Positions 1 through 23,496 of a stretch of DNA of 64,000 nt are shown here, one piece after another. The stretch covers positions 496,001-560,000 of the forward strand of contig CDROCS010000506.1 in assembly GCA_977020255.1 (NCBI GenBank). Direction: 5' to 3'. Within the stretch, counting starts at the first letter, position 1, and every line of letters begins with the position of its first letter. Under the pieces are notes generated by a model. It was not told where the DNA came from. It ran no database searches and saw only the letters and a program-made list of their open reading frames with translations. The stretch is from Obrimoposthia wandeli (Eukaryota). The translations under genes were made by a program, and so were the position numbers.

Positions 1-446
1 CCAATTTCGCCCGGCTGATTGGCATAATCTACTTTCGCTGCATTTTGCGTGTTATAGGCTTTATTTGGCATCTCACCACGGAATAAATCCATGGTGTTTA
101 ACGTGGTGATAAAGCGAATTAGACGGCGGTCATACTCTTCTTTTTTTATAATACCGAGTTCTAGTGCACTCGTCATACCCGCTAAATACGAAGCCGCATC
201 CCACCATGTTACTGATGGGTAATTATTTACCGCATTCACTAGCCCCGTAGATTCTTGATAATTATTCTCAAAATATTTCCATGCGATACGCGCCATGTCC
301 ATTTCTTTCTCGGTCAAATCACCTTGTCTTGCAGGTGGAATTGACCAATGATCTTTTCTATCAACGATGTCTTCTGAAAAACTATTATATTTACTGCCAC
401 AACCAGAGACCAGTAACCCTGCCAGGCAAACCATCGCTATCCGCAT
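1..446 (-). CDS. DUF3131-family lipoprotein, 3' end truncated by the window edge (absent from the ORF track)
   Basis: Read by hand from the reverse strand: AGGGAG RBS, ATG at 446, MRIAMVCLAGLLVSG-C (lipobox), then MARIAWKYFENNYQESTGLVNAVNNYPSVTWWDAASYLAG...EMPNKAYNT, collinear with the DUF3131 ORF at 471-1787. Confidence 0.85.
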   Translation of the reverse strand, partial: MRIAMVCLAGLLVSGCGSKYNSFSEDIVDRKDHWSIPPARQGDLTEKEMDMARIAWKYFENNYQESTGLVNAVNNYPSVTWWDAASYLAGMTSALELGIIKKEEYDRRLIRFITTLNTMDLFRGEMPNKAYNTQNAAKVDYANQPGEI

Positions 447-470
447 ATAAAACTCCCTGTGATATGCAAA

Positions 471-1787
471 CTATTTCGCACCAACACGTAATAATGTACC
501 ATTTTGAACATAAGCAAGAGACTCTAAGATAATGCCATTGGTATTTGCTGTAATTGCTTTGTTAAGACGGCCATCACTTTCATAACGACCTGAATACCAA
601 CCTTTTTGTGCTGAGTATAGGCTTTTAACATCACCCATTAACAGGCTTGTATACTCAGTATCGTACAAGGCGTACCAACCGAAGGATGCTTTAGTAGATA
701 ATGTCTTTAAATGTGACGCATCTTCACCTGTATCTGAAATTGCATTCCATTCTTTACCGTCAGAAAACACCGTGTTATAAACAAAATAAGGCGCAACATC
801 GACATTATCTTCACTCACAGCAGTTAAGATACCTAAGCGCTCGTAACGGTTTTCTTGCGCTTTATAAACACGATAGGCAAAGATTTCTGAAATACTGTCA
901 GCACCAAATTCTAAACTATCTAAAATATATGACTCACTCACCACGTAGTTATGTGCATGGTACTTAGCCGGATCACGTCTATCTGTTGGAATATCAACAC
1001 CATCAATATTAACCATTTCTAAATAATCAATATATTTCATCGCGTTAAATACATCGAGACCCATTAACGATAACGCTTTAGAGGCATATTCTTCATAGCC
1101 AATACGTCCTTCTTGCACCAGTTCTAAACCACCTGTTTTTGCTGGGCGAGAACCATATAAATAGCCTTTGTCGATCAAGCTGCCAACATGCCAGTGATTC
1201 AATACATCGTTCACTTGCTTGTTATAGTCAGGGTATTGCCAAATAAGAATGTTTAACGGCACCAAAATACGGCCAATATCAATCGCAGACCAACCAATAC
1301 CATCAGCCACAGGGTTATTTGCATAATCCACCATTTCAAGAGTTTTGGTGTTATAAGCTTTGTTTGGTAGCTTGCCTTCGATCAAGGGTAAGCGCGCTAA
1401 TGTGTGTAGCACTTTCTCCATTTTTAAATCAAATTCCGCTTGGCTAACGATATTTAATTTTTCAGCGCCAATAAGCCCCATTAAATAAGACGCAGTATCC
1501 CACATCGTTGTAGAAGGATAGCCATCAACAGAATTTACAAGTCCGGTATTCGGCTGCACATTATTATCAAAATAACGCCAAGCAGTCTTGGCCCACTCAT
1601 ACTCTTCTGCTGTTAAAATACGGCTTTCACGCAGTGGAATAGGCTCTTCCGTGGTAAAAGATAGATTACCTAGTACTTGCGTGTACTCACGTGTTTCAAT
1701 TGTAAAAGCAATGACTAACGCAGTCACTAGACCACCAATAAATACAAAATGGTGACGCGCTTTAATTAAGTTTTGTTTAAACGCCAT
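471..1787 (-). CDS. DUF3131-family protein (putative (alpha/alpha)6 glucanase/transglycosylase), N-terminal membrane anchor
   Basis: AKTAWRYFDNN, TGLVNSVDGYPSTTMWD, LPNKAYNT, GWSAIDIGR, EGRIGYEEY, VSED motifs; start reassigned to MAFKQ (ATG 1787), which overlaps the GT2 stop. Confidence 0.8.
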   Translation of the reverse strand: MAFKQNLIKARHHFVFIGGLVTALVIAFTIETREYTQVLGNLSFTTEEPIPLRESRILTAEEYEWAKTAWRYFDNNVQPNTGLVNSVDGYPSTTMWDTASYLMGLIGAEKLNIVSQAEFDLKMEKVLHTLARLPLIEGKLPNKAYNTKTLEMVDYANNPVADGIGWSAIDIGRILVPLNILIWQYPDYNKQVNDVLNHWHVGSLIDKGYLYGSRPAKTGGLELVQEGRIGYEEYASKALSLMGLDVFNAMKYIDYLEMVNIDGVDIPTDRRDPAKYHAHNYVVSESYILDSLEFGADSISEIFAYRVYKAQENRYERLGILTAVSEDNVDVAPYFVYNTVFSDGKEWNAISDTGEDASHLKTLSTKASFGWYALYDTEYTSLLMGDVKSLYSAQKGWYSGRYESDGRLNKAITANTNGIILESLAYVQNGTLLRVGAK

Positions 1788-3627
1788 ATTCAAATCCCTC
1801 TGATTCTTGTTCTTGTTTTTTTTCTGTTGGTGGAGTCCAAAATGCGGCAGCAATCATGCCCCACATCGCCATCATATTATTCACAATCCAAAAACTATTC
1901 AGTACTAACCCGCCAAACGAGTAATCACCAAAACTGCCCGTTACATAGCTAAACCAGGCAAAACACATACTGAATAAACTTAATACGAACACCCCTATTT
2001 GCGGCGCGACTAACTTCCAAAAAGTACCCGTTTGACGTTCTTTAGGGGTCGTTGGGAAGCTAATTTTACGGCCTCGAAGTACCGTCCATAACGCCCGCAG
2101 ATTAACTGGGAAGAAAGATAAGAAATTGGTTTTACCTTTATAACCAGCTACCCCCCAAGTACCTAACATCATGGCTAGTTCAGCGGTAATAACAAATGGC
2201 AAGAAGTGCATATAGAATGTCGTATCATAAGCACTTACTGGCGCAAGGCTGGTAAGGAAATAAACGATAGGACAAAGTAAGAAAATAATGTTCCATACAG
2301 CCGACAAATTTGACCAGAAACTGGCTAAATACATCGCCTTCTGCTTTAACGACATGCCTTTTTTCAATAACGGATTATCATTCATAAAGATATCAATCGA
2401 ACCACCAGCATATTTGAAACGCTGTACAGTCCAAGTTTGTAAATCCTGTGGCGACAGCATTTTACTTTCCACTTCAGGATGCTGTACTGAACGCCAATTA
2501 CGTTCGGTATCGGAATGCAAAACAATCGAGGTATAGATATCTTCTGATACATGAAATTTATACGGGGTAAAATCGGTATCAAACAAGATCTCTTGGCGTA
2601 AGTTAGCCGAAATATCTTTATCGACTTCTTTCTCTTTGGTTAACTTACGGATCTGCTTTTCAATATCTTCTTGTGACTGACTGATCTGCGCGCTGTAGCT
2701 TCGTAGTGCAGCTTCCATCACGGCTTCACGACGGTGGATAGAACCCGCACCACAACAGAAAGAAGCATTCACCCAGTTACGACGGCGCTGGATCACGTCA
2801 TAAAACATTTGTGGGTCGTTAACAAACGGGTCTTCGCCTAATGTGACAGGTCCATAGCACTTTTCAACTAAACGACCTAACCCATGTCCTACGCGACCCA
2901 TTTTACCTTGTAACCAATCAGGTAAGCGTTGGCCTTCAGGCAAGTCAAAGAACCATTGTGGTGTTTGTACCCATGCCACATCAGGGTCACGAAAGTAACC
3001 GAGAGTGTGTTCTAGTATTGTCGAGAATGGTCGAGTATCAGCGTCACAAATAACGATAAAATCACCATAGCTTTGCTCTAATGCATTTTTAAGGTTACCG
3101 GCTTTAAAACCTTCGTTGTTATCACGGGTAATATATTCAACATTATATTCCGCTGCTAACGCAGCCATCGCTGGACGACGACCGTCATCGAGAATGTATA
3201 TTTTAGTTTCAATTTCAAATGGGTAAGTAATATTTAACGCATCGCGAATACTCAAGCGCACCAATTCTGGGTCTTCATCATAAGTAGGGAAGAAAACATC
3301 AACACTGATTGGTCTATCTTCTTCTGTATCCGTGACACATTCAGCGAGTTTAAATGGCGGAGACTGTTTCGGCTCGTCTTGAGTTTTCCACAAGTTAAAG
3401 GTAAACAATACCGAACCAATAAAAGCACAAGATTCAGCGAATGCTAATGGCAGCGAAAACCACAACGCATCATAATTTAACGCAAAGCTCCAACGCCACC
3501 ACAGATACCACACACCTAGGGTCAGGTTACATGTCGCTAAATATTGATAAGCGAGCTCACGGCTAAAACTATATTCGGATGGTTTTGGCGGCTTACGATG
3601 CTCAAACTCTTTGAAATAAAAATCCAT
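1777..3627 (-). CDS. Processive GT2 glycosyltransferase, cellulose-synthase-like, without PilZ
   Basis: LDDGR, ICDAD (DxD), TPQ, FCCGAG, SED and QRFKY motifs; 2 N-terminal and about 4-5 C-terminal hydrophobic helices; start at MDFYF follows GGAG. Confidence 0.88.
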   Translation of the reverse strand: MDFYFKEFEHRKPPKPSEYSFSRELAYQYLATCNLTLGVWYLWWRWSFALNYDALWFSLPLAFAESCAFIGSVLFTFNLWKTQDEPKQSPPFKLAECVTDTEEDRPISVDVFFPTYDEDPELVRLSIRDALNITYPFEIETKIYILDDGRRPAMAALAAEYNVEYITRDNNEGFKAGNLKNALEQSYGDFIVICDADTRPFSTILEHTLGYFRDPDVAWVQTPQWFFDLPEGQRLPDWLQGKMGRVGHGLGRLVEKCYGPVTLGEDPFVNDPQMFYDVIQRRRNWVNASFCCGAGSIHRREAVMEAALRSYSAQISQSQEDIEKQIRKLTKEKEVDKDISANLRQEILFDTDFTPYKFHVSEDIYTSIVLHSDTERNWRSVQHPEVESKMLSPQDLQTWTVQRFKYAGGSIDIFMNDNPLLKKGMSLKQKAMYLASFWSNLSAVWNIIFLLCPIVYFLTSLAPVSAYDTTFYMHFLPFVITAELAMMLGTWGVAGYKGKTNFLSFFPVNLRALWTVLRGRKISFPTTPKERQTGTFWKLVAPQIGVFVLSLFSMCFAWFSYVTGSFGDYSFGGLVLNSFWIVNNMMAMWGMIAAAFWTPPTEKKQEQESEGFEYGV

Positions 3628-3648
3628 CTTCTTTCGCTCCAAGTAACT

Positions 3649-5352
3649 TTAATTAAAATAGCTATTATGTACAGCTAATAAACCAATTAGACTGGCGTTA
3701 TAATCAATTGCAAATTCATTCACGGCATATGATTTTTCACTGTCCACATAACTCATCATCCCTTCATTTTTCGGGGCTACCCCAGCTTGGGCTTTTTCGT
3801 TAGGCCCACCAACTAAGAAACCAGGTAAGCTAATACCCGTCGATATCCGGTATAAGTGATGCAGATTACGCACCGCATAAGTGCCAGTGTGAGTAACAAA
3901 ACTCATGTTAAATGCGTTAGCACCTAATAAATAATCAATCTGTGACTGCACTACACCACGGTAATTACGCGTCTGTGACGAGGCATCCACACCTGCCATT
4001 AACACGCCAGCCTCAGCGGTCATTTTATTTGACCCCCAAATAAAACGTTGGTTAGCAATGGCAAAAGGCGCTATTGAGGCTTGCTCTGAATAACGTTTGG
4101 CAACCTGCTCAACATCTTTACGTAATTGCGCGGTCAGTTCGCTATCAACAGATTCGATAAGATGAGAGATACCCATTAACGCCGGGTTTTTCCATTCAAA
4201 AATAGCCACAAACTCTTTATCGTATAAATCATCAAATCCAGTTAAGTACTTGCCTTGCTTCGTACTTAAATATAACTCTGCCAGTGCCCATAAACGGTCA
4301 TCTACATCCGTTTCTAATGATGCTTCACTGTCTTCTGGATTTTGCACATAAGGACCTGAACCACTATCGTCACCTTTTTGCCAATCTATATATTGTTCTG
4401 GCTGTTGCTCTAAATAGCGCCAAGCATGAATCGCAGACTTTAAATAATCACGCGCTAAATTTGGGCGCAAAGGTTTCAATACACGAGAGGCGAATGCCAT
4501 CGTTGCTGCAAATTTGGCCGTTTCAGGCGTACTCACACCGTAGATATAGCGAACCTGCTGATCTTGCCAAGGGACTATTTTATCCGGCCATTTAGCCCCT
4601 GATACTTTGCGATAAACAGCGCCATCTTCGCGCTGCATTTTACCTAACCAGTCCAAGCCATATATCGCTTCTTCCAATATGGCTGGTAATGTACTGTCGG
4701 CATGATTGCCAGTCATAAATAACGCTGGCGATTGACTATAAGCTTCCAGTAAACGCGCAACCGTGATCGTGGTCGTCGCAACATATTTACCGTAATCACC
4801 CGCGTCATACCAACCACCCGTCATATCTAATTGCTCTCCCGCTTGATGGTAATCATCACTGCGGAAAATAATTGCATCTTGAACATGGCTTTGTGGTCGA
4901 TTCATACCTGTTGTTTGATCGAAGATTGCGCTGCCTGAACGTTGTAAATACAATGCTTTAACAAGGCGAGCTGCCAGTCCCTGATAAACATTATCGGCAA
5001 TCTGAAACGGTGCAGAGGTCGTCGACTTACTTTGTAGTTGATACCAACCAGGCTGGGTAACATTAGAGAAATTAATTGCTTTAGAGCCAGATTCAATCGT
5101 CACACTGAAAACACCCACCTCATTTTCTTTTGTCTCATTACCTACAAGTGGTTCTGCACCTGCCGTATCCATGGCGACTAAATTGACTAATTCTTCAGAA
5201 GGGTTTAACCAATAGGCTTTTTTATCGCCACTAGGTAGATAACCAAGTTGATTAACAACGAGTTGATTACTGTCTTGCTCGCTCATAGCGGTACTAGAAA
5301 AAGCTAAACTTAATAATGTAACAACGACAATCCTTGCCATAGCTCTTGCCAT
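3649..5352 (-). CDS. GH9 endoglucanase with signal peptide and N-terminal Ig-like domain
   Basis: NQLGY Ig motif, GGWYDAGDYGK, LHH and NEFAIDYNA catalytic motifs. Confidence 0.9.
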   Translation of the reverse strand: MARAMARIVVVTLLSLAFSSTAMSEQDSNQLVVNQLGYLPSGDKKAYWLNPSEELVNLVAMDTAGAEPLVGNETKENEVGVFSVTIESGSKAINFSNVTQPGWYQLQSKSTTSAPFQIADNVYQGLAARLVKALYLQRSGSAIFDQTTGMNRPQSHVQDAIIFRSDDYHQAGEQLDMTGGWYDAGDYGKYVATTTITVARLLEAYSQSPALFMTGNHADSTLPAILEEAIYGLDWLGKMQREDGAVYRKVSGAKWPDKIVPWQDQQVRYIYGVSTPETAKFAATMAFASRVLKPLRPNLARDYLKSAIHAWRYLEQQPEQYIDWQKGDDSGSGPYVQNPEDSEASLETDVDDRLWALAELYLSTKQGKYLTGFDDLYDKEFVAIFEWKNPALMGISHLIESVDSELTAQLRKDVEQVAKRYSEQASIAPFAIANQRFIWGSNKMTAEAGVLMAGVDASSQTRNYRGVVQSQIDYLLGANAFNMSFVTHTGTYAVRNLHHLYRISTGISLPGFLVGGPNEKAQAGVAPKNEGMMSYVDSEKSYAVNEFAIDYNASLIGLLAVHNSYFN

Positions 5353-5361
5353 AGTTATCTC

Positions 5362-7680
5362 CTAACGGTCTTGGGGTAAATAGTCATTTCTACTTACTTC
5401 ATTATCTTGCTGGTCATATAAAATTATCGTCACTGCATCAGATAAACCTGCTAATGACTGTTTATTTAAAATAATACTTGCGGTGTTTGCGTCGATATTG
5501 ATGCTCTGCATACTCCAAGTATCACCATCTTCATTATCTCTAATCAGCATTTTCATATCTTGATAAGCACGTAAACTATCATTGATAACAGTGATAGTTA
5601 TCGACTGACTCGCGCTGCTATTTTCACGTTCTAACACTGCCAATAGCGGCTGGTAAGCACTTTGCATAGCAACAAAACCAGGTTTTGCAATACGATCTAC
5701 ATCAAGTACCGACCAAGTGATTGCATTCCAACTATCGTTAAACATAAATTGATAAATTGCAGCCAATCCTGACCCTTTATTTAATCTTAGTTGCTCGATT
5801 GCCGACTTGGTTATTAATCGTTGATATTCCTGACTATTACTCACGAATTGTGACAGAGATTCACCTTCGTCAATTTTGGCTATTTGTAGGGTTTCACGAG
5901 GTTGGTAATTGTGGTAGCTGAGTTGCTTAATAAGCTTAGCTGAAAGCGGCCATGCAGGCACTTCGTCCAACATGTCAATAACAGCGTTATAACTTGGCAT
6001 TGCTTGCGCACCAAATTCACTGACAATCGCCGTTTTCGGTTTCTGGCTATAATCACTATAATGCCCAGAGTACCAGCCAAGCCAAGGATGTTCAGCAGTA
6101 TAAGATGCCTTACGCACGATCCTGTCATCATTTACAGTAAGCAACTGCTGGTAGACAGCCTCTGTTAACGCGACATTTTTATCTGTTTTATAACTCGGGT
6201 ATTTGTATTGCATCCAAGTTGCATCCCAAGGCGGTTCATTTTGACCGCACCAAAATGCAATAGAGGCATGGTTATATAACATGTCAGTCATATCTTTAAC
6301 TTGTGATACCGCTTCAGCTCTAAATTCAGCGCTATCGCTATAGCCCCATTGCAGTGGGAAATCTTGCCACACGATCATGCCAAGTTTATCCGCTTGCTGA
6401 TAAAATGCTTTTCCAGCTACATGCGCATGTACGCGAATACTGTTGATGTTAGCCTTGCGCATTAGCTTTATATCATTGGCATAATCGAGTTCACTTACCC
6501 CGCCCAACCATTGACTAGCAATATAGTTCGTACCACGAATAAAATAAGCACGGTCATTAATATAGAAAACCCCTTGGCCTTCATCAAAAGCTACTTTTCT
6601 AAAACCGATATTTTGCTTACTTATATCGGATGTTTCATTATTCATGCTTACTTGTACTGATAGCTGGTATAAATTCGGATTGCCCCAGTCCCACGGCCAC
6701 CACAACGCCCGCTTAACTTGTGGTAACTGCCAATCAATAACCTGTTTGCCAGTCACTACTTGTGTGTTCAATTTATAAGTTTCTAGCTCATCACCAAACA
6801 CCTGTGTTTTATCATCAAGATCAAGGTCACCACTGCTATTACTCTGAATTCGAATTAACTTAAACTCTAATGTCACATCACCCGCATACAGGCTATCTAA
6901 CGTAATCGCGACCTGCCCCGCTGTTTTCTGGAGAGCCACATCGAGCACTTCCGCCTTTACCTTAATATTATCAATCGCGATTAAGCCAGTTGTACGTAAT
7001 GCGACATCGCCCCAAATACCACCAGAATTACGATCTTGACCGCGGTCAGACCATGCGCCTCCAGGGCGAGTGTCATGGTGATTAAGAACGCCTTTAATTA
7101 AGGTTTTATTTAAAGACCAATCTTGGGTTAGTGTTTCATTCGGGCTATCCACTAATACTTCTAGTTGATTATCTCCGCCATTAATCGCATTCGATACGTC
7201 TAACGAAAATGGCGCAAAGTAACCTTGATGAGAACCGACATCGATATTGTTTAAACGCACTGTCGCCGCGTAATCGACCGCGGTAAAATCCAGCCAATAA
7301 CGTTTAACTAGATCTGATGTTAAAGATGACGAGAGAGCGACATTTGGCAGTGAAAATTGGCGATGATAAATAGCTTTACCTGCATGATTTACGCCTTCAT
7401 TATACCAATTGTTTGGTACTGAAATGGCAGTGACCACGCCAGAAGCTACGGATTGATTATTGTCGACTTGCGTTTGAGAGTTCTTGAGTTGCGTATTATC
7501 GAGTTGTGTATTGTTGAATTGAGAACTTTTGAGTTGAGTAAACGTCGGGGGGATTATGTCGAACTGCCAATCACCGTTAAGTGATTGGCTATTCGGGTTG
7601 ACATCATGACTGTATTTAGATGTACTGCAAGAAGTAACTAACAAGATGTTCAACAAAATAAATACAGTTTTTATGTTCAC
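5362..7680 (-). CDS. GH2 glycoside hydrolase (beta-mannosidase/glucuronidase-like) lipoprotein
   Basis: GTG start at 7680 after GAGGA gives MNIKTVFILLNILLVTS-C (lipobox); IRGTNY, RVHAH, WCGQNE (acid/base) and VSEFG (nucleophile) motifs. Confidence 0.85.
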   Translation of the reverse strand: MNIKTVFILLNILLVTSCSTSKYSHDVNPNSQSLNGDWQFDIIPPTFTQLKSSQFNNTQLDNTQLKNSQTQVDNNQSVASGVVTAISVPNNWYNEGVNHAGKAIYHRQFSLPNVALSSSLTSDLVKRYWLDFTAVDYAATVRLNNIDVGSHQGYFAPFSLDVSNAINGGDNQLEVLVDSPNETLTQDWSLNKTLIKGVLNHHDTRPGGAWSDRGQDRNSGGIWGDVALRTTGLIAIDNIKVKAEVLDVALQKTAGQVAITLDSLYAGDVTLEFKLIRIQSNSSGDLDLDDKTQVFGDELETYKLNTQVVTGKQVIDWQLPQVKRALWWPWDWGNPNLYQLSVQVSMNNETSDISKQNIGFRKVAFDEGQGVFYINDRAYFIRGTNYIASQWLGGVSELDYANDIKLMRKANINSIRVHAHVAGKAFYQQADKLGMIVWQDFPLQWGYSDSAEFRAEAVSQVKDMTDMLYNHASIAFWCGQNEPPWDATWMQYKYPSYKTDKNVALTEAVYQQLLTVNDDRIVRKASYTAEHPWLGWYSGHYSDYSQKPKTAIVSEFGAQAMPSYNAVIDMLDEVPAWPLSAKLIKQLSYHNYQPRETLQIAKIDEGESLSQFVSNSQEYQRLITKSAIEQLRLNKGSGLAAIYQFMFNDSWNAITWSVLDVDRIAKPGFVAMQSAYQPLLAVLERENSSASQSITITVINDSLRAYQDMKMLIRDNEDGDTWSMQSINIDANTASIILNKQSLAGLSDAVTIILYDQQDNEVSRNDYLPQDR

Positions 7681-7690
7681 AATGTTCCTC

Positions 7691-8146
7691 TTACTGCGTC
7701 CACAATTTCTTGTGAAATTCAAAAGTGTTTTTATTATCTTCACAGGTATAGATAAGACTATCCGTTAGCTGAACAATAATGATGAAACCGCGTCCAGACG
7801 TAGTCCAAGTAGCCTCATCATCCGGATCTGGCACCACAAATTCAGCATTCACTGCCGCTTTAAAGGCACTGCGATCCATTGCTTGACCAAAATCAGAAAT
7901 CTCAATCACTAATTCAGCATCATCTTTTAAGTAACAGATCACTTCAATTGGGCAGCCATCAGTTAGCTCATATGCATGTTCGTAAGCATTATTAACTAAC
8001 TCTGCAATACATAATTCAACCTGCCCCATGATATTTTCTTCGATGTCATTTTCGAGAGCAAAAGCATTTATATCTTCCGCTATCACTCGCGCGACATCAT
8101 CCGAGCTTTGATAATTTTGCTTAAAAAGCTGCTGAGTGTTCGCCAT
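7691..8146 (-). CDS. RsbW/SpoIIAB-like Ser/Thr kinase (HATPase, anti-sigma type)
   Basis: ELVNNAYEH N-box, ISDFG, SGRGF; AAGGAG upstream of MANTQQ. Confidence 0.88.
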   Translation of the reverse strand: MANTQQLFKQNYQSSDDVARVIAEDINAFALENDIEENIMGQVELCIAELVNNAYEHAYELTDGCPIEVICYLKDDAELVIEISDFGQAMDRSAFKAAVNAEFVVPDPDDEATWTTSGRGFIIIVQLTDSLIYTCEDNKNTFEFHKKLWTQ

Positions 8147-9392: not shown

Positions 9393-9404
9393 TTCAAACC
9401 TCCA

Positions 9405-9737
9405 TTAAGCATCAACTGCAATAGCATGATCAACGCTGTCGTAACACGTGATTAATTGATCCATACGAGTTAGTTTTAACAGCTCTTTCACTGCACGTTG
9501 TGGATTAACCACGCTCAGTTTTTTGCCACGTAACATTTTATAACCGGCCATCACGGCGCCTAATCCACTGCTATCCATAAACCTTACCTGTGTTAAATCA
9601 ATAACCAGATGTGCATCAACACTCTGAGACAACTCTGTTAATTGCGTTCTAAAATCTGGTGCTAAGCGAGCGTCAAAACGTTCCTCATTTATTTGAAGAA
9701 CTGTGCATTGACCTTGGTTGATAATTTCGTGTTGCAT
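9405..9737 (-). CDS. STAS-domain anti-sigma-factor antagonist (RsbV/SpoIIAA-like)
   Basis: LVIDLTQVRFMDSSGLG containing the conserved phosphoacceptor Ser; about 110 aa. Confidence 0.92.
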   Translation of the reverse strand: MQHEIINQGQCTVLQINEERFDARLAPDFRTQLTELSQSVDAHLVIDLTQVRFMDSSGLGAVMAGYKMLRGKKLSVVNPQRAVKELLKLTRMDQLITCYDSVDHAIAVDA

Positions 9738-10948: not shown

Positions 10949-11189
10949 TGATAAACTAACCACCCTAGAAGCTAAAAGAAATTAAATACACAAGGTGTAT
11001 CTATACCAAAAGTGTTAATATTCGGCCCATAACTTCAGTCTAGTTAAGCAGCTAATAGCTGCAGACAATTAGCACCAAAGTTTGATCTGTGCCACAAATA
11101 TTTATGTTACGGATAAGATTAACTTGATGTTATTGCTCCATTAATAAGAGGATAGGATCCTATTTTAGAATTAAGCATGACACTTACAA

Positions 11190-12200: not shown

Positions 12201-12214
12201 CGCCACACCTTGTG

Positions 12215-12291
12215 CTTCAATTCTTCAATTCTTCAATTCTTCAATTCTTCAATTCTTCAATTCTTCAATTCTTCAATTCTTCAATTCTTCA
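12215..12291. repeat. Octanucleotide microsatellite (CTTCAATT)x9 plus CTTCA
   Basis: Counted directly; perfect units. Confidence 0.98.
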
Positions 12292-12448
12292 GGAGGATAT
12301 TAGAGGGATATTTTAAATACCTCACACTTTGACTTTTATGTTGAAAATATCCGCTACGATAGAAAAATCCCTAACTATGTTTAGTAATGATGATCAAATT
12401 TATATACCACATTGGGTAGACATTATTGAACAAATAGTAGGAGTTCAT

Positions 12449-15400: not shown

Positions 15401-17311
15401 GAAGATGGCAATAACACCATCAATTTAGGTGAAGGCACAAACACATTATACGGTGGTGCTGGTGCAGATACTGTCATCTCAGGCAGTGGTAACGATCAAC
15501 TCTCCGGATCTGGCGGAGACGATAACCTTTCAGGTGGTGCGGGTAGCGATCAACTCGAAGGTGGTGATGGCAGCGATATCTTATCGGGGGATACTGGTGA
15601 GGACACCCTCTTCGGTAATGACGGTAACGATACCTTACTTGGTGGTGATGGCGCAGATAAACTGTTTGCTGGTGCGGGTGATGACCAATTATTTGGTGGT
15701 GCTGGCGCCGATGAATTACATGCTAGCAGTGGTAACAACACCCTATCTGGTGGTGATGACAATGACACCCTTTATGGCGCAGCAGGTAATGACATTCTTA
15801 GAGGTGATGATGGTGATGACCGACTCGAAGGCTTTGACGGTAACGATACGTTAGAAGGCGGTGCTGGCGATGATAGCTTAAACGCTAGCAGTGGTAATAA
15901 CCAACTCGATGGCGGTATCGGTAATGACGAACTTTCGAGTGGCGATGGAGATGATACGCTCCTCGGTGGTGAAGGTAATGATACGCTCGATGCCGGGGCT
16001 GGTCATAACAACATATCTGGTGGTTTAGGTAACGACACTATCACCGCAGGCGCTGGCAATGATGTTATTAGCGGCGACTCGGGGAACGATACGATTAATG
16101 CCGGTGATGGTGATAACCAAGTTACTGGCGGCATAGGCAGTGATGTCATTAACGCGGGAACGGGTAACGATGCCATTAGTGGCGGTGATGACAATGACCA
16201 AATAACAGTGAGCGGTGGTAACAACCAAATCCTGGGTGATGCAGGTGATGATCAAATCAGAACTGGCGCAGGTAGTGACCAACTATTCGGTGGTGAAGGT
16301 GCGGATAAACTTTACGCCGGTAGTGGTGACGATCAGCTTGAAGGTGGTTCTGGTAACGATAGGCTTTATGGCCAAAATGATAATGACCAATTACTCGGTG
16401 GTCTTGGCGATGATTACCTTAGTGGTGGCTCTGGTGATGACTCCCTACTGGGTGGCGAAGGTAATGATTACATTCGCGGTGACAGTGGTAACGACACACT
16501 ATACGGTGGCGTTGGTGATGACACTGTTCGCGGCGGCAATAATGATGATATCGTCTTTGGTGAGTCCGGTAATGATACCTTAACTGGCGACAACGGTAAT
16601 GATCAGCTCTTCGGCGACATTGGCGACGACAGCCTGCAAGGTGGTTCAGGGGAAGATATTTTATCTGGTGGCGCAGACAACGATAACCTAGCTGGCGGTT
16701 CTGGTAATGATAATCTAGATGGCGGCCTAGGTGACGATCAATTAACCGGTGACAGTGGTGATGATATCCTCTTCGGCCAAGCGGGTAATGACACCTTAGA
16801 TGGCGGCACAGGTAGCGATCAATTATTCGCAGGCGCAGGTAATGATACCTTGATCTTTGATATCACTGAAACAACGAATACCGATGGGGCAACCGTACAC
16901 TTTAGTGGTGGTGCTGGCTTTGACGTATTAGCCGTTGGCAGTGATTCAGATAGCCAAATTATTGATATGACACAAACAGCCTTCCAAGAAATTGAAGGGG
17001 TGGTCGTCAATGCGAGCGATGCTCAACTGAAGATCTCTCTTGATAAAGTGCTGCTTAATGACACAGCTGAAGTGAGCAATAGTCAATTTGTTTGTACAGG
17101 CGCTGATAAGCTAGATTTAAACGGTTTCAACTGGGAAGTATCAAGTAATAATGCCACGCTAAATGATGACTTACGCGATGCCTACGAAGCAAGTAACATC
17201 AATACTGACTCACTATTTGGTTACACTTTTGCCAATGATGAAGGTAAAGAAGTGACAATCTGGAGTGACAGTGAGCAAGAGAATATTAGCTTTAACGGTG
17301 CAGATGTTTAG
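12449..17311 (+). CDS. Giant RTX (GGxGxD nonapeptide) calcium-binding protein, T1SS substrate
   Basis: AGGAG RBS before MQGTNSDD (12449); GGxGxDxLx repeats almost continuous from about 13040 to 16860; acidic C-terminal secretion region; no Sec signal. Confidence 0.9.
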
Positions 17312-17361
17312 CCACTAATAAGCAAATAACGTGAAGTCATAAACCAATAACTGAAGCAGTA

Positions 17362-17396
17362 AAAAAAGGCGGTGATATTTAATCACCGCCTTTTTT
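17362..17396. terminator. Bidirectional intrinsic terminator
   Basis: AAAAAAGGCGGTGAT-ATTTA-ATCACCGCCTTTTTT between convergent genes. Confidence 0.9.
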
Positions 17397-17558
17397 ATCT
17401 CTAAAATATAAACCACAGCTGCGAGAATAAACTCGGCAGGTATAAAAACGACAGACATAAAAAAACACACAGTACAGCTTTAGTTAAAAGCAATACTATG
17501 TGTTTCAAGCAGTTTAAGTAGACTTAACTATCTAGTTTCATCATAAGTTAAACCTAAG

Positions 17559-18395
17559 TTAACTATTCAGACATAGCTTTCTATTCTTAGCAGTAATCAA
17601 ACTATCATTGGAAATAACATAAAAGAAGTAATCATCATCCATTTCATTAGTCTGAATATAAGTACGGATATGATTTAGAATACTTTTAGCCTCGTTGTAA
17701 CTATACAAGTAGCCCTTATCACACTCATTCACCACGTCTAAATCGACCTGTAAGCGATCAAATTGACTCATTAGATCATCTACCCGAGTCACATGTGCTG
17801 CTTGCTGAGCTTCACTGGCATAGCGTACTTCGAACTCAGCCTTCTGTTTTTCCCACGCAGCTACATCACCCACTTTCGCCAATACCTGTGCCTCTTGCTG
17901 CTGTAAGCGCGCAGATTCTAAGTTCAGTTGGTTACGGATAATCGCCAAACCAGCTTGCTCTGCGATCAAGATTTGTTGCTGTTCGGCAATACTCGATGCT
18001 AATTCTTTCTGAAAAGAGCGGCGTAAATCTTTTATATTTTGATCTTTACGTTTCAGCTGTTTACTTTGATACTCTGATTTTAACTGTAATTCATCAATCA
18101 CTTTTTGCTGCGTAGCAAGTTCCTGCTTTTGTATTAACAGCATTTTTTCCAACGTAACATATTCCGTTGACATTATTTGTGCATCGCCTTGTTGATTAGC
18201 TTTCAATGAATCAATCGACACTTGCTGCTCGGTAATAATATTGTTTTTAGTGGCGAGTAAAGCCACATCATTATGACGCTCTGTATACTGCCACGCTGTC
18301 GTGCCAACTAACCCCAACAATATGACCATCACGGTACCAGCGAAAACCAATGCTTGGTTCATTGGCATTGATAAACGATTCTGCTTTTGTTTCAT
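17559..18395 (-). CDS. Hypothetical single-pass membrane coiled-coil protein
   Basis: One N-terminal TM helix, long Q/K/E/L heptad region, short C-terminal domain with 2 Cys; GGGGAG RBS. Confidence 0.75.
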   Translation of the reverse strand: MKQKQNRLSMPMNQALVFAGTVMVILLGLVGTTAWQYTERHNDVALLATKNNIITEQQVSIDSLKANQQGDAQIMSTEYVTLEKMLLIQKQELATQQKVIDELQLKSEYQSKQLKRKDQNIKDLRRSFQKELASSIAEQQQILIAEQAGLAIIRNQLNLESARLQQQEAQVLAKVGDVAAWEKQKAEFEVRYASEAQQAAHVTRVDDLMSQFDRLQVDLDVVNECDKGYLYSYNEAKSILNHIRTYIQTNEMDDDYFFYVISNDSLITAKNRKLCLNS

Positions 18396-18424
18396 CTCAA
18401 CTCCCCCCATTAAGCTACCCTCTA

Positions 18425-18664
18425 CTAAGCGATATATAGTTGTTTCGTTTTACACTGCGGACAAAAATATGACTTAATGTGAATGCTAGATTGGCAATTT
18501 TGACAGATCATATGTTTACGATCTTTGCTTAAATACATACAAATAACACCCACTGGCCCCAGCACATAACCGAGTAAAATACCGGCCACTAAATTACCTT
18601 TTTGATAGCCCATATAAGTCGACAACAAGAAGAAAAATAAATAAAACCCTAACCAAAATAACAT
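18425..18664 (-). CDS. Small membrane protein with C-terminal zinc ribbon
   Basis: Two hydrophobic segments then CQNC...CPQC. Confidence 0.75.
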   Translation of the reverse strand: MLFWLGFYLFFFLLSTYMGYQKGNLVAGILLGYVLGPVGVICMYLSKDRKHMICQNCQSSIHIKSYFCPQCKTKQLYIA

Positions 18665-18679
18665 GCTACATCCTTATAA

Positions 18680-19975
18680 TTATGTTTCTCTAAACGCACG
18701 GTTATACGACGTAAATAAAGGCGCGGTGAAATAATCCCACAACGTACGATCTTCTAATAAAATGAGTACTTCTGTGGGCATACCCGGGTACAAATTAATG
18801 TGAGTAAGCGCCTTTAATTCCGCGCTATTTAATTTTACTTTGATCCGGTAGCCTGCTTTGCCGTCATTGTTTTGTGGGATCCGGTCCGCCGCAACATACA
18901 CGACCTCCCCTGTCACCGGGGCTGTATTACGAATACTGTAAGCAGAAAGCCTGACTTTAGCTTTAAGACCCTGCCTAACCATATCAATATCTTCTGACTT
19001 AACGATAGCATCGACAATTAATTCATCGCCTTCAGGTACAATTTCCATCAGCACTGCTCCAGCGTTAACAACACCACCAACACTATGCACATTCAAACCA
19101 ACCACAGTACCTGCATGCTCACTGCGAATTGTCACCTTGGAACGCGCATCTCGCGCTACATTTAATGCTTGCAACACATCCCGAAGTTCCTTGGATAAGC
19201 TGTCCATTTTCATTGTATATTGCTGCTTTAGCTCTACGTTTTCAGTTTTAAAATCTTGTTCTAATGACGCTGCTTGACGGTTTAATACTCTGCTCTCTGA
19301 ATCAAGCCCTGCTCTTTTAGCTAGCACTTCGGCCTTATTACGTTGCAGCGCCATCACCCGTGTTTTGGATACATAACCTTTATCTAATAACCCTGATAAC
19401 ATCTCTAATTCTTGATCAATTAATACCAACTGGTTATCAACGGCAATAATTTGATATTGAGCGCCTCTAGACTTCTCTTCCAACAAGGTTTTTCGTTGTG
19501 AAAATTGCTCAATACGCAATTCATTATGTAGCACCTCTTGCTGATATTGTAATTGTTGACTGGCAATGATATTACTGTATTCAATACTTTCGACATCTTG
19601 AATAGTAGCGTCGCTCCACACCACGTTATCGTGCCCATTCAATGCAGCAGATAAACGATCATGCTGCGCTTGCAGAAATGTTGCACGCTGTTGTAATCGA
19701 CGAAAATCAGCATCCACTTGGCCACTTGCAAGCTCTAGTAACATATCACCAGCCTGTACTTTTTGCCCCTCAACAACATGTATCGCCTTCACCCAACCAC
19801 CGTCTAAGTGCTGGATTTTTTTACGCTGAGACTCGACAATAATCGTTCCAGGGGCAATAGCGGCAGAGCTTAAATGCATCGAGGTCGACCAAGCAATAAA
19901 ACCACCGATCGTAATAACAATACTAAGGCAACCCGCAATGATAAGCCCACGTGTATCAAATAGCTGTTTATCCAT
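18680..19975 (-). CDS. Type I secretion membrane fusion protein (HlyD/PrtE family)
   Basis: TM anchor, IQHLDGGWVKAIHVVEGQKV, IRSEHAGTV, LYPGMPTEV. Confidence 0.93.
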   Translation of the reverse strand: MDKQLFDTRGLIIAGCLSIVITIGGFIAWSTSMHLSSAAIAPGTIIVESQRKKIQHLDGGWVKAIHVVEGQKVQAGDMLLELASGQVDADFRRLQQRATFLQAQHDRLSAALNGHDNVVWSDATIQDVESIEYSNIIASQQLQYQQEVLHNELRIEQFSQRKTLLEEKSRGAQYQIIAVDNQLVLIDQELEMLSGLLDKGYVSKTRVMALQRNKAEVLAKRAGLDSESRVLNRQAASLEQDFKTENVELKQQYTMKMDSLSKELRDVLQALNVARDARSKVTIRSEHAGTVVGLNVHSVGGVVNAGAVLMEIVPEGDELIVDAIVKSEDIDMVRQGLKAKVRLSAYSIRNTAPVTGEVVYVAADRIPQNNDGKAGYRIKVKLNSAELKALTHINLYPGMPTEVLILLEDRTLWDYFTAPLFTSYNRAFRET

Positions 19976-21704
19976 GCTGTTTCACCTTCTTAACTTCACT
20001 ATCAACGGTAGACACACCATTCATTGCACCAAGGAATTGCTCACATGTCCCCGCTTTTTCAACCTTACCGTCTTTAAGCACCACGACCCAGTCCATCTGC
20101 CTTAAAAACCCAGGTCGGTGGCTAATCATCACTACTGTTATGCTATTTTCTTTACAGTATTGCAGTACAATTGACAGGGCGACTTCACCTTCAGGATCTA
20201 AATTAGAGTTGGGTTCATCAAGGACGAGTAATCTAGGATTAGAAAAAATAGCTCTAGCCAAGCCAATACGTTGTTTTTGACCGCCAGACAGCTGCAAACC
20301 GCCTTCACCAAGGTAAGTATCATAGCCTTTGGGTAATGAAATAATCAGTTCATGAATACAGGCAAGTTGCGCGGCATGAATTATTTTTTCAGCTGGTGCA
20401 TTCGAGTAACGGCAAATATTTTCAGCCACAGTGCCCGCGAGTAAACCCACTTCTTGTGGTAGAAAACCTATGTGTTCACCAATTTCATTTTCGGGCCATA
20501 ATTCCATCGCAGCGCCGTCAATTTTAACCGCCCCTACCGATGGTTTGTGGATCCCCATGATTAAAGCAGCAAGCGTTGATTTACCTGAACCAGTATTACC
20601 CATGATTGCGAGTGCTTGCCCTGCTCCGAGTTTAAAATTAATGTTTTGTAATACTGCGCGCTGTTGATTAGGAAACTTTAACCCCACATTTTCTAACTTC
20701 AATTCGCCTTTTGGTACTGGCAAGCTCGTTTTAAACTCGTCATCCAGCGCACCTTCATTTAATAATTGTAAACGTTTGAATGCATTCCAAGCGCTGTACC
20801 AGCCTTTCCATCCGGCAACCGCTTGTTCAAAAGGAGATAATAAACGCCCCATAATAATCGAACTGGCAATAATAGACCCAGCACCCAGCTGTTGCTGTAA
20901 TACCAGCATGACACCGACAGTCAAGATAGCCACTTGTAACAATGTTCTAAAGTAACGACTAACAGCTAATAGCTGCCCTGTTCTTGCGTTTACTTGCCAT
21001 TGCAGTGCTAACACTTGCTGGTTTTTATCGTGCCACACCTTGCCTATATTATCGGCCATGCCCATCGCGCGTAACATCGGCGCATTTCTTAAAAAGTCAT
21101 TAAGTTCCATACTGGTTTTCATGGCTAATTCTTGCGACTCGCCGCTCGGCTTACGTGCTGCATACATCATCAGCAATGCCAATACTACAAACACTGCACT
21201 ACCAATAAGGGCGACGATACCAAGATAGGGGTGCAGCATGAATAGAATAACCAGAAATACGGCAATCCAAGGAATATCAAAAATGGCAGATGTTGAAGGG
21301 CTAACTAAAAAATTCCTTAGTTCGGTTAAATCTTGTAAACCTTGTTTGTGAATGCAGTTATGCTTAGATGACTGACGAATACTGTCGGCAAGTAATAATG
21401 GACTGAGCGTCAGATCCAGGTTCAACCCCGTTTTTTGTAACAGTAGTGTACGAATATGTTCGATGACAGCTTGGGCTGTTAATAATATAACCGCGATGGC
21501 TAATAAGGCGTATAGCGTATCTAAACTGGCGCTACTCAATACCCGATCAAACAACTGCAAGCTATATAAAGGTAAGGTTAATACCAAAAAATTAATAGCA
21601 AGGCTAAATATAACCACGTAAACAAGATTTTTCTTGCACACACTAAACGCGCTTTGTAGCTCATTTTTCAACAAGGTAGATATCCTTAAAAGCGTAAGTC
21701 CCAA
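19968..21704 (-). CDS. Type I secretion ABC transporter (PrtD/AprD family), canonical ATPase
   Basis: GNTGSGKST, FLPQE, LSGGQKQR, LVLDEP, ISHR all intact; exact start uncertain (TTG). Confidence 0.93.
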   Translation of the reverse strand: MGLTLLRISTLLKNELQSAFSVCKKNLVYVVIFSLAINFLVLTLPLYSLQLFDRVLSSASLDTLYALLAIAVILLTAQAVIEHIRTLLLQKTGLNLDLTLSPLLLADSIRQSSKHNCIHKQGLQDLTELRNFLVSPSTSAIFDIPWIAVFLVILFMLHPYLGIVALIGSAVFVVLALLMMYAARKPSGESQELAMKTSMELNDFLRNAPMLRAMGMADNIGKVWHDKNQQVLALQWQVNARTGQLLAVSRYFRTLLQVAILTVGVMLVLQQQLGAGSIIASSIIMGRLLSPFEQAVAGWKGWYSAWNAFKRLQLLNEGALDDEFKTSLPVPKGELKLENVGLKFPNQQRAVLQNINFKLGAGQALAIMGNTGSGKSTLAALIMGIHKPSVGAVKIDGAAMELWPENEIGEHIGFLPQEVGLLAGTVAENICRYSNAPAEKIIHAAQLACIHELIISLPKGYDTYLGEGGLQLSGGQKQRIGLARAIFSNPRLLVLDEPNSNLDPEGEVALSIVLQYCKENSITVVMISHRPGFLRQMDWVVVLKDGKVEKAGTCEQFLGAMNGVSTVDSEVKKVKQHG

Positions 21705-21909
21705 CTAAAAAGTATAGTAAAAAAAATACCACAATTTAATTAGTTTTAGTGTTTTAAGATCAAGCTCACGTTTATGACTGCCCACTGCTAAAGATCGTAG
21801 GTAAAACCAAGTCACTATTCTAGTATCGAATGAATAAATCATGTATTACAGGTAATTAAGCACATTATGGCTAACCTAAGAGGTCTATATATTAACGCTT
21901 AACGCGAGA

Positions 21910-23496
21910 GTGATGATCTCAATAGCGATCTTATCGATCGTGAGCTTTACTAGCATTGCAGAACCGTCACCAACCCAACAAGATAACGAACCTGAAAAAT
22001 TAAGTTTTTATGGGGGCAGAGCTGTACCTCATGTACCTGTAAGTGATTCACAGACTCAAACATCATCATCAGGCGCTAGTGAAAACTCAAACAAGCGCGG
22101 GTCACAACGCCGAGCAATACACCCTACTGATACCGAAGACAGTAATACGGAAAGTGCGCCTCCCCAACTAACTAAACAAAGCCAAAAAAAGTTAAGCGTA
22201 AATAATGCTATAAAAATAACAGTTCAATCACCTGAAAAGGTTATTTTAAAAAACAATGGAATAAAAGTAACTTCGCTGTCTGACGATACAACAATAACCA
22301 CCAAACAGCTGACGCGAGAAGATTTAGTATTAGCCAAAAAAGCGCAGTATTATATCGAGCGTAATTGGAATAAAAACACCGGTTTAATTGATTCTGTACA
22401 AGGTTATCATCACGCAACACTTTGGGATATGGCCAGTGGTATTGGCGCCATTCTCGCGTTAGAAAAACTTGAGTTAATCAGCAGTTTTGATGCGTCATCT
22501 CGACTCACTAAAACCTTAATAACCCTGTTTAAACTACCACTGTATAACAACGAATTACCGAATCGAGAGTACAATACTCAATCAGGCTTACCGTCGGGTT
22601 CTCTCAGTAAAACAGCTTCTAACGGTAACGGTTGGTCGGCATTAGATATTGGCCGCCTGTTAATTTGGTTAGAAATAACCAAACAATACAAGCCAGAATT
22701 AACGCCGCTAATTACGTTAATTACCAAAAAGTGGAAGTTTGAACGAACAGTGTTTAATCAGACTCTGTATGGTGAACTGAAACAGAAACGCAGCACTTCA
22801 TATCGTCAAGAAGGTCGCTTAGGCTATTTACAATATGCAGCGCAAGGTTATCAATTCTCGGGACTTGATGTGGCAAATGCATTTAAACAAGATAATACCA
22901 CCGAGATTATGCAAGAAGGCATCCCCCTTCATATCGACCAACGTAACCTGCCTTTTTTTACTAGCGACAGTTATGTACTCCAAGCGATTGAACTCGGTAG
23001 CCCTATTGTGTGGTGGAATCAATTAGAAAACGTTTACCAATTACATAAAACGCATTATGCAGACACCAAAATACTGCGGATATTTGCTGAAGATGCGATG
23101 AGCAAAGCACCGTGGTTTTCTTATAACAATATTAATATCTATGGTAAATCATGGTTAAGTACCAATACCCGAGGCAAATCGATTACTAATCCGCAAATAT
23201 TTAGTAATAAAGTCGCCTTTGCTTTTAGTGTGCTTTTTGATGATGATTTTAGCCAACAACTCGCTACTCAAGTGCTTTCTAATAGCTTATCTAAGCGCTC
23301 AGTACCGACTGGGTTATATCAAGACAGTTCGACCAATACCGCTTACAACATCAATACTAACTCATTAATATTAGTCGCATTATGGTTTAAATCCCGTAAT
23401 AACACGCCGATTTATCAACCCGCAGATAGCCGCTTGAATAAAATAGTGAATACGACCGTTAATAAAAACAATAGTAACGACTTAACAGCACTTTAA
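21910..23496 (+). CDS. DUF3131-family protein, third paralogue, with signal peptide and disordered N-terminal linker
   Basis: TGLIDSVQGYHHATLWD, LPNREYNT, GWSALDIGR, EGRLGYLQY. Confidence 0.8.
   Translation: MMISIAILSIVSFTSIAEPSPTQQDNEPEKLSFYGGRAVPHVPVSDSQTQTSSSGASENSNKRGSQRRAIHPTDTEDSNTESAPPQLTKQSQKKLSVNNAIKITVQSPEKVILKNNGIKVTSLSDDTTITTKQLTREDLVLAKKAQYYIERNWNKNTGLIDSVQGYHHATLWDMASGIGAILALEKLELISSFDASSRLTKTLITLFKLPLYNNELPNREYNTQSGLPSGSLSKTASNGNGWSALDIGRLLIWLEITKQYKPELTPLITLITKKWKFERTVFNQTLYGELKQKRSTSYRQEGRLGYLQYAAQGYQFSGLDVANAFKQDNTTEIMQEGIPLHIDQRNLPFFTSDSYVLQAIELGSPIVWWNQLENVYQLHKTHYADTKILRIFAEDAMSKAPWFSYNNINIYGKSWLSTNTRGKSITNPQIFSNKVAFAFSVLFDDDFSQQLATQVLSNSLSKRSVPTGLYQDSSTNTAYNINTNSLILVALWFKSRNNTPIYQPADSRLNKIVNTTVNKNNSNDLTAL

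Follow-up and report, generated by a model that had tools for sequence, protein, structure and literature searches.

A candidate envelope beta-glucan synthase cluster with four DUF3131 paralogues of the beta-1,2-glucanase fold, one of them altered on its putative acid-bearing helix

The sequence analysed (hereafter the window) comprises 64,000 nucleotides of contig CDROCS010000506.1 (positions 496,001 to 560,000 of the forward strand; assembly GCA_977020255.1, deposited for Obrimoposthia wandeli), contains no N and has a GC content of ~40%. It encodes a BcsA-like family-2 glycosyltransferase (GT2) together with members of the domain family DUF3131 (PF11329). We read this region, with slightly better than even confidence, as an envelope beta-glucan synthase cluster that works with four proteins with the fold of the SGL clan of beta-1,2-glucanases, here termed A, B, C and D, of which D would have changed chemistry. 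Gene content, gene order, anchors, fold class and residue patterns are reported as seen; the working mechanism is a proposal built on them. The elements that carry the argument were as follows.

1777-3642, minus strand: BcsA-like family-2 glycosyltransferase (putative synthase/translocase) of 621 aa, with a Pfam Glycos_transf_2 match
471-1787, minus strand: DUF3131 paralogue A, 438 aa (PF11329, 482.6 bits)
1-446, minus strand: DUF3131 paralogue B, N-terminal 148 aa only (PF11329, 125 bits)
21910-23496, plus strand: DUF3131 paralogue D, 528 aa (PF11329, 294 bits)
1086-1112, minus strand: motif E226-G-R-I-G-Y-E232-E233-Y of A (aa 226-234), with E226 or E232 as the candidate general-acid Glu
22810-22836, plus strand: motif E301-G-R-L-G-Y-L307-Q308-Y of D (aa 301-309), in which the Glu-Glu of A, B and C is replaced

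The original prediction had called three DUF3131 genes in the window, numbered 1 (here B), 2 (A) and 3 (D), and these were borne out by PF11329 scores above the gathering score of 20.3 bits, with E-values ranging from 5e-36 to 1e-144. A and D cover profile positions 1-366 of 367. As B is clipped at the window edge, and a third tandem gene lies just beyond it in relatives, the system comprises four paralogues. In Photobacterium swingsii, the GT2 gene is followed by three tandem DUF3131 genes, a gene for a secreted protein without a Pfam match, and a second glycosyltransferase (GT) gene. The DUF3131 open reading frames were classified in 48 genomic loci plus plasmid loci. The tandem order A (transmembrane, TM), B (lipoprotein) and C (second lipoprotein) was unvarying in 50+ gamma-, beta- and alpha-proteobacterial loci, including those of Photobacterium, Vibrio, Aliivibrio, Shewanella, a Sphaerotilus metagenome-assembled genome (MAG), and plasmids of Pantoea stewartii and Paracoccus. 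Of this triplet, the window holds A and the start of B, with C lying past position 1.

Paralogue D formed 119 close orthologue clusters, drawn from Vibrionaceae, Shewanella and Moritella; in Shewanella, it belongs to the same cluster and lies 3-5 kb downstream of C. In a maximum-likelihood tree, A, B, C and D were each monophyletic, (A,(B,C)) was supported at 94/98, and D fell outside on a long branch. D was missing from the three-copy clusters on the Pantoea and Paracoccus plasmids, and the Klebsiella three-copy cluster, as reported in the literature, is likewise without it. On this distribution and phylogeny, D is best described as an accessory member, of a deep separate lineage and dispensable in many lineages. 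Two further arrangements were seen. A metagenomic protein of 923 aa (P0240) bears two complete DUF3131 domains one after the other (1060 bits over two stretches), as if two paralogues had fused naturally. The Shewanella abyssi contig NZ_JAKIKR010000010.1 carries two non-overlapping cluster loci (57357-78679 and 28730-50052) that run in opposite directions and whose gene coordinates and identities are the same, and the whole cluster appears to be duplicated there as an inverted repeat ~7 kb apart.

The paralogues differ at their N-termini. That of B reads MRIAMVCLAGLLVSGC, then GSKY, with the lipobox L-V-S-G-C and Gly at +2. In A, it reads MAFKQNLIKARHH-FVFIGGLVTALVIAFTI-ETRE, with basic residues preceding a 19-residue hydrophobic stretch (mean Kyte-Doolittle value 2.07); neither a Cys nor an AxA site was present in the N-terminus read from the translation. 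D begins (M)MISIAILSIVSFTSIA, then EPSP, a short Sec-like signal, and continues into a linker of ~120 aa, with an AlphaFold pLDDT below 50 at residues 13-93 and a folded domain from residue ~136. The three different anchors originally described were thus all seen, with the linker somewhat shorter than the ~130 aa claimed. Across the orthologues, a lipobox ([LVI][ASTVI][GAS]C after a signal-type h-region) was found in 0/52 members of group A, 51/52 of which have a TM-like stretch; in 47/52 members of group B (length 465 aa), 46 of those with Gly at +2; and, by regular expression, in 39/50 members of group C. The D linker is of low complexity and variable, yet among 120 protein N-termini from Vibrionaceae, Shewanella and Moritella the motifs SFYGxR and (F/Y)QRRAIAPP were conserved. 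In the window these read SFYGGR (aa 32-37; 22003-22020, plus strand) and QRRAIHP (aa 66-72; 22105-22125, plus strand), and they look like docking motifs.

The AlphaFold models were of high confidence (pLDDT 92.2 for A and >90 for the D domain). In Foldseek searches of the PDB with the A and D models, the top 20 matches belonged exclusively to the SGL clan (E 4.5e-11 to 9e-5; TM 0.47-0.65) and included structures of GH144 (5GZH, 4QT9, 3EU8), GH192 (8XUJ), GH194 (8XUK), GH189 (8WY1, 8RF0) and GH162 (6IMU). Other (alpha/alpha)6 enzymes ranked below these, with E above 1e-5 and at least tenfold weaker. The models therefore place A and D in the (alpha/alpha)6 fold of the beta-1,2-glucanase clan. 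The GH189 structure 8wy1 was also reached by sequence (phmmer E 0.008; family profile E 4e-4), with the match confined to N-terminal helices over 59-95 residues. The relationship to the GH144/GH189 clan that the original prediction had put forward thus held on both grounds, and the structure prediction it had proposed returned the clan fold for the A and D models.

To compare the family with GH189 by profile, 80 metagenomic loci were fetched with a back-translated W-S-G-x-M-F-E-Y-x-M-P pattern, and 52 domains were aligned. The hhalign comparison with these 52 domains gave a probability of 95-96% and an E-value of 6e-9, with 130 N-terminal columns confidently aligned. Block-wise GH189 searches were below significance, probably because the barrel has an internal pseudo-repeat. 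The GH189 helical insertion is absent: the DUF3131 domain measures ~375 aa against ~570, the GH189 alignment has ~200 extra columns, and the DUF3131 genes stand alone. PF10091 (Glycoamylase) matched a GH189 domain (53.9 bits) and none of ten A-D proteins at E-values up to 10, which ruled it out as a sequence bridge to GH144. HMMER searches of PDB sequences (phmmer queries A, D and B; the full-family profile; a sub-profile of positions 205-345) gave, beyond the N-terminal 8wy1 match, spurious matches only and none to the GH144 chains, and 2.3 Mb of fetched loci contained CGS genes only and no GH144-type genes. By sequence, the DUF3131 proteins would not be assigned to GH144. The clan groups of Nakajima et al. 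2025 do not include the window proteins, one of those groups (Group 4) has no known substrate, and NCBI labels SkSGL and several Group 2 proteins "DUF3131 domain-containing" (PMC12102758). PgSGL4, a clan protein without a substrate, was considered as a D orthologue and rejected, being a multidomain protein of 1142 aa under another accession; A0A0C5WPQ3 is the D orthologue of P. gaetbulicola and is distinct from PgSGL1-4.

The residue census covered 52 A, 52 B, 50 C and 130 D sequences (284 total; numbering as in A). The residues D170, R173, E226, R228, Y234, D269, E293, F335, Y337 and W347 were invariant in all four groups, and D170 aligns with the S-x-V-D-x-G motif that bears the candidate base of GH189/192/193. 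E232 and E233 are retained in A, B and C, and D has Leu at 232 in 130/130 sequences and Gln at 233 in 125/130. The contrast between EGRIGYEEY and EGRLGYLQY, and between SESY (aa 284-287 of A) and SDSY (aa 352-355 of D; 22963-22974), was present as originally described, although the spans first given for the two EGR motifs covered only part of each. The change from Glu to Gln is real and fixed across the D orthologue group; the claim of one lost acidic residue needed amending, as two positions differ (E232 to L307 and E233 to Q308). Fixation of the Leu-Gln pair across 130 D orthologues marks a lineage signature under selection and not decay. Distant DUF3131 proteins from Mesorhizobium, Sulfitobacter and Limimaricola plasmids, tried as an outgroup, lack Glu at 226, 232 and 233 and thus do not polarise the change. 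W96-D97 and E285 are retained in A, B and D (E285 as Asp in D) and lost in C, which would make C as good a candidate as D for an altered or non-catalytic member. C (L001:12766-14151 and 49 other loci) has Lys or Gln at 415 and keeps E226, E232 and E233.

The genes surrounding the DUF3131 paralogues are as follows. Those on the minus strand form a single operon running from 10963 down to 1.

9689-10963, minus strand: PP2C (SpoIIE) phosphatase with a fused response-regulator receiver; opens the operon and is conserved across loci
9405-9767, minus strand: STAS anti-sigma-factor antagonist (family profile search)
8121-9392, minus strand: sugar-1-phosphate nucleotidyltransferase with a left-handed beta-helix tail (Pfam NTP_transferase, 178.6 bits); in nearly all loci
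7691-8167, minus strand: anti-sigma-type serine kinase (HATPase_c_2) of the partner-switching module (family profile search)
5362-7743, minus strand: GH2-family glycosidase (Pfam GH2 domains); accessory, start codon uncertain
3649-5352, minus strand: secreted GH9 endoglucanase with a CelD_N domain (Pfam Glyco_hydro_9, 252 bits); accessory
11190-12200, plus strand: secreted 336-aa barrel-like protein, a candidate outer-membrane component (weak Pfam PLA1 match)
23615-24421, plus strand: secreted GH16 beta-glucanase of the lichenase type, adjoining D (NCBIfam BglS, 225 bits against a cutoff of 300; ExoK, 138 bits)

The GT2 motifs QTPQWF, FCCGAG and SED(I/L)YT (SEDIYT in the window) were present in 52/52 orthologues. 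The NCBIfam CelA score was 213 bits (cutoff 699), no PilZ domain was matched in the GT2 by Pfam or NCBIfam, and neither BcsB nor BcsC was matched among the cluster genes scanned with the same libraries. The first 11 nt of the A gene are shared with the end of the GT2 gene. A second GT and the sugar-nucleotide pyrophosphorylase are core members of the cluster, and the secreted protein without a Pfam match, whose gene follows C, also belongs to it. The barrel-like protein is encoded divergently from the operon, ends in SYSFSF, and contains QPWNPDFTY.FGY repeated twice; its match to Pfam PLA1 (outer-membrane phospholipase A) reached 25.7 bits, below the cutoff of 27. A homologue was found beside the cluster in 48 of the 54 other loci searched, including those of the Pantoea plasmid and the Sphaerotilus MAG. 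The barrel-like protein and the Pfam-less secreted protein would be better export candidates than any DUF3131 protein. The GH9 gene is present in about half of the related loci; a GH16 gene lies inside the cluster in many Vibrio genomes, and two GH16 genes flank the Paracoccus cluster. As no sigma factor gene is present in the cluster, the partner switch may target an enzyme and not transcription. Within that module (7691-9767, minus strand), the STAS and kinase genes are separated by the nucleotidyltransferase gene, and the gene ends overlap.

The cluster probably makes a beta-glucan and remodels it in the periplasm. The GT2 motifs, the pyrophosphorylase, the second GT, the lack of uptake genes, the occurrence of OpgC and a salt-shock module point to synthesis and remodelling and not to catabolism: neither a sugar uptake transporter nor a TonB receptor was seen in the loci read, OpgC is encoded in the Paracoccus, Klebsiella and Salmonella versions of the cluster, and the Shewanella piezotolerans cluster genes form a salt-shock co-expression module. 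That the DUF3131 proteins and the GH2, GH9 and GH16 enzymes instead degrade environmental beta-glucans, with the GT2 unrelated to them, is a very unlikely explanation. The characterised clan members are mostly degradative beta-1,2-glucanases and three other glycoside hydrolase families are encoded nearby; however, the GT2 and A genes overlap and are inseparable across phyla, the pyrophosphorylase and second GT are core members, and uptake genes were not seen in the loci read. Distant DUF3131 genes of Mesorhizobium and Rhodobacterales plasmids also directly follow large glycosyltransferase genes, so that the pairing of a glycosyltransferase with this domain seems to be a general theme, reminiscent of the fused CGS. 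These distant domains (24-26% identity) lie at the C-terminus of 830-940-aa plasmid proteins (L055:1275-4106, L056:4615-7152, L057:4612-7101); the Mesorhizobium protein, the only one scanned, has a DUF2334/polysaccharide-deacetylase-like N-terminal part.

The genes of the partner-switch module and of the sugar-nucleotide pyrophosphorylase lie upstream of that of the PilZ-less BcsA-like GT2. In the mechanism we propose, this GT2 would polymerise the glucan and push the chain into the periplasm. A would be held on the inner membrane by its N-terminal helix, and B and C, as lipoproteins with Gly at +2, would most likely reside on the outer membrane. A, B and C would most likely act as endo-glucanases or glucanotransferases that cut, transfer or cyclise the nascent chain. 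The barrel-like protein, with the accessory GH9, GH16 and GH2 enzymes and, in some lineages, OpgC, would serve export, trimming and decoration. D would be a secreted, accessory and deeply diverged member, with Leu-Gln in place of Glu-Glu on the first turn of the acid helix.

The original prediction had the three window paralogues form a relay across the inner membrane, periplasm and outer membrane in place of BcsB/BcsC, with D as a non-catalytic scaffold. The spatial spread on which it was based is real, with A at the inner membrane, B and C as lipoproteins whose +2 residue is other than Asp, and D soluble. The three anchors were found, no BcsB/BcsC homologue was detected among the cluster genes scanned, and the overlap of the A and GT2 genes would suit a synthase partner. 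The conserved triplet, however, is A-B-C, and D lies outside it as an accessory member with a long branch of its own, lacking in the three-copy clusters of Pantoea and Paracoccus and, as reported, in that of Klebsiella. In addition, the cluster is regularly accompanied by a barrel-like protein whose C-terminal residue is Phe, and most of the invariant acidic residues are kept in all four paralogues, which makes enzymes likelier than passive conduits. We consider the relay unlikely.

Whether D lacks the general acid depends on which Glu fills that role. The clan is defined by a general-acid Glu acting via the +2 glucose (XcSGL E239, CpSGL E211, TiCGS E1356), a Phe near the nucleophilic water and a Tyr stacking at subsite -3 (XcSGL F286 and Y367); a candidate base is located upstream, at a distance of 66-72 residues from the acid, and GH189 adds a nucleophile Glu. 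The motif comparisons with GH144, GH192 and GH193 were read by eye from the supplement sequences of PMC12102758. The functionally important Glu of a GYxE motif, named in the original prediction, is real for GH144: counted on the Data S4 sequence, CpSGL E211 lies in T-G-Y-N-E, and D400, E142 and F268 fit the same count. In GH189, GH192 and GH193, the acid lies in E-x-R (LLASEARQ, KANESRL and QVSETRI, respectively; PMC12102758 Data S4).

Two registers are available. In the second, the acid is E232, which is Leu in D. In the models, residues 226-230 form a loop rich in Gly and the helix begins at 231, and the sequence pattern of the characterised families suggests an acid at the start of the following helix. 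The helix-end G-L-D-V (G-x-D-V) matches the G-D-V-P of GH189/GH193 in this register, the hydropathy correlation with the GH189 acid helix is higher at 232 (r 0.59-0.63) than at 226 (r 0.23-0.35), and the GH144 acid motif T-G-Y-N-E resembles I-G-Y-E-E. In the first register, the acid is E226, kept as E301 in D, and the invariant Q-E-G-R matches the clan E-x-R. The odds between an acid at E226 and one at E232 appear roughly even. Whichever register applies, the changed residues are predicted to lie on the first turn of the acid-bearing helix, so that the Glu/Gln position was placed within the putative active site and not outside it. Of the other clan residues, an aromatic at 281/282 (Y-V in A and B, F-F in D) and the invariant Y337 are at spacings compatible, by eye, with the clan Phe and Tyr. 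The GH189 nucleophile, E1442, lies in G-I-S-E-S with an adjacent His-His (H1536/H1537). E326 (A-V-S-E-D) aligns with it in the colinear hhalign run, as the block's best local match at an E-value of only 0.37, and a GH144-style reading places A323 at the nucleophile position and not E326. The His-His position reads N-T-N in the DUF3131 census.

In a rival explanation built on the first register, all four paralogues, including D, would be active, with the Glu of the invariant Q-E-G-R as the acid, and the Leu-Gln pair would only retune substrate or acceptor preference or the acid pKa; we put the chances of this somewhat short of even. E226 and R228 are invariant in the 284 sequences, GH189, GH192 and GH193 share the E-x-R acid, and a colinear hhalign local run pairs K237 with the GH189 Lys at +11. 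In that register, the positions matching 232/233 are hydrophobic in the characterised families, and the Leu of D would resemble the outgroup state. Against this explanation stand the loop at 226-230 with an acid elsewhere found at the helix start, the longer-window hydropathy correlation, and the fit of G-x-D-V in the 231/232 register only. Changed chemistry in D is the best single reading of these sequence patterns; the stronger proposal, under which D has no general acid and would bind glucan instead of cleaving it, stands at about even odds.

Several observations weigh against the interpretation as an envelope beta-glucan synthase cluster with a chemically changed D. For the GT2, QRFKY (aa 407-411; QRFKYAG in the window) replaces QxxRW in 51/52 orthologues, including alpha- and beta-proteobacterial ones, so the enzyme may not behave like BcsA. 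For the alignment with GH189, the C-terminal half alone gave an hhalign probability of 0.3%, and the local and global modes disagreed on register. The acid register was drawn from sequence, profile, helix and hydropathy evidence and not from coordinate superposition, and the gapless profile score against GH189 favoured E226 (+5.1 at 226 and -6.0 at 232). D keeps every other invariant acidic residue and may thus be fully active; D246, E361, E394 and D353 are retained in it. The signal, lipoprotein and TM calls were rule-based, made with no dedicated predictor. Finally, the linkage is ambiguous by analogy: GH9 and GH16 suggest beta-1,4 and beta-1,3/1,4 bonds, and the fold clan suggests beta-1,2.

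The comparison with characterised systems showed partial likeness to each. GH189 is the only family whose solved structure was reached by sequence; it has the same (alpha/alpha)6 fold, shares the motifs TSPTN/TTMWD, L-x-N-x-YNTKT, S-x-(V/I)-D-x-G and E-x-R-L-(A/G), and in CGS an SGL-fold domain is likewise paired with a glucan-making glycosyltransferase. In CGS, however, the domain is fused with GT84 in a 2800-aa cytoplasmic enzyme, whereas here it is separate, predicted to face the periplasm, and encoded beside a GT2. The helical insertion of ~200 residues is missing, N-T stands in place of the His-His by the nucleophile, and either A323 or E326 may be the counterpart of the nucleophile Glu, which makes a retaining mechanism a possibility only. 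GH144 (CpSGL 5GZH/5GZK; Bacteroides 4QT9 and 3EU8) gave the best Foldseek rmsd and TM (TMt 0.61-0.65), and its members are secreted single domains of similar size in which T-G-Y-N-E (the acid) and G-L-T-A resemble I-G-Y-E-E and I-L-T-A; a sequence relationship was not detectable, and GH144 genes lie in degradative loci and do not follow a synthase gene. In GH193 (SkSGL, Group 2 of Nakajima et al. 2025), the acid lies in S-E-T-R and the helix ends in G-D-V-P, as read by eye, but SkSGL is a secreted hydrolase of Gram-positive origin that carries an Ig-like tail.

The Bcs cellulose synthase resembles the system in its membrane GT2 with QTP, FxCG and (T/S)ED motifs, which probably couples synthesis to export, in the endoglucanase of its operon, and in a periplasmic partner gene directly downstream. 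It differs in that the GT2 here has no PilZ and carries QRFKY in place of QxxRW, no BcsB/BcsC was found among the genes scanned, a partner-switch module stands in place of a c-di-GMP receptor, and the endoglucanase is a GH9 and not a GH8. In the osmoregulated periplasmic glucan (OPG) pathway (OpgH, OpgG/OpgD and OpgC), a GT2-made periplasmic glucan is likewise remodelled by periplasmic proteins of glycoside-hydrolase fold, and OpgC in the Paracoccus, Klebsiella and Salmonella versions and the Shewanella salt-shock module add to the likeness. OpgG/OpgD, however, are GH186 beta-sandwich proteins of unrelated fold, and no OpgC gene lies in the window. Some glycosidase families have catalytically dead, lectin-like members, such as the chitinase-like lectins. 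If E232 is the acid, D likewise exchanges the acid for Leu/Gln in an otherwise conserved pocket; unlike those proteins, D has an invariant E301 that may act as the acid.

The operon genes have their best named relatives in Photobacterium (83%), and the D gene has its best in Moritella marina (81%), where the locus is syntenic, with RTX, type I secretion system (T1SS), DUF3131 and GH16 genes in identical order. The window is accordingly assigned to a Moritella-like gammaproteobacterium. Between the operon and D lie the following.

12329-17311: RTX-repeat protein of 1660 aa, with 50 HemolysinCabind stretches
18680-21704: type I secretion ABC/MFP pair

A coiled-coil-like open reading frame of 283 aa is also present in this interval (within 12329-21704), and the GC content climbs to 0.50 inside the RTX gene. 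The arrangement of RTX protein, type I secretion genes and paralogue D recurs in Moritella marina. A second secretion set on the minus strand, within 25399-42413, encodes two ABC proteins, a TolC-like OEP, a response-regulator protein and an HlyD protein; beside it lies the gene for a 2655-aa cadherin/Big-repeat adhesin (34446-42413) with DUF642 and CBM-like stretches.

The cluster is widespread, occurring in Vibrionaceae, Shewanella and Moritella as well as in Klebsiella, Salmonella and Pantoea, and is uncharacterised: a full-text literature search found DUF3131 in four papers, none of them functional, and related searches gave no study of the cluster. A bolder version of the proposal, which we regard as doubtful, is that the cluster encodes a new envelope or periplasmic beta-glucan pathway, a split, exported counterpart of the cyclic-glucan synthase that is mobile in Klebsiella, Salmonella, Pantoea, Paracoccus and Nostoc. 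The DUF3131 proteins would then be a new GH189-related glycoside hydrolase family of periplasmic glucanotransferases, and D would be an acid-less, product-binding member docking by SFYGxR/FQRRAIAPP.

Every characterised clan member acts on beta-1,2-glucans, sugars of the envelope with links to osmoadaptation, symbiosis and virulence. Two routes to these glucans have been assumed so far, one by the giant CGS and one by OpgH with OpgG/OpgD. The cluster would add a third arrangement which, if true, consists of a cellulose-synthase-like GT2 with a constant set of three, in some cases four, clan proteins that are each anchored separately, and could account for an accessory block that has drawn notice in Klebsiella, Salmonella and Pantoea without being understood. 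Since C drops W-D and E285, and D drops E232 and E233, a comparison of the paralogues could reveal the catalytically relevant residues. According to the authors of GH189, a clan for that family awaits another retaining family of this fold, and the DUF3131 proteins are a candidate for it.

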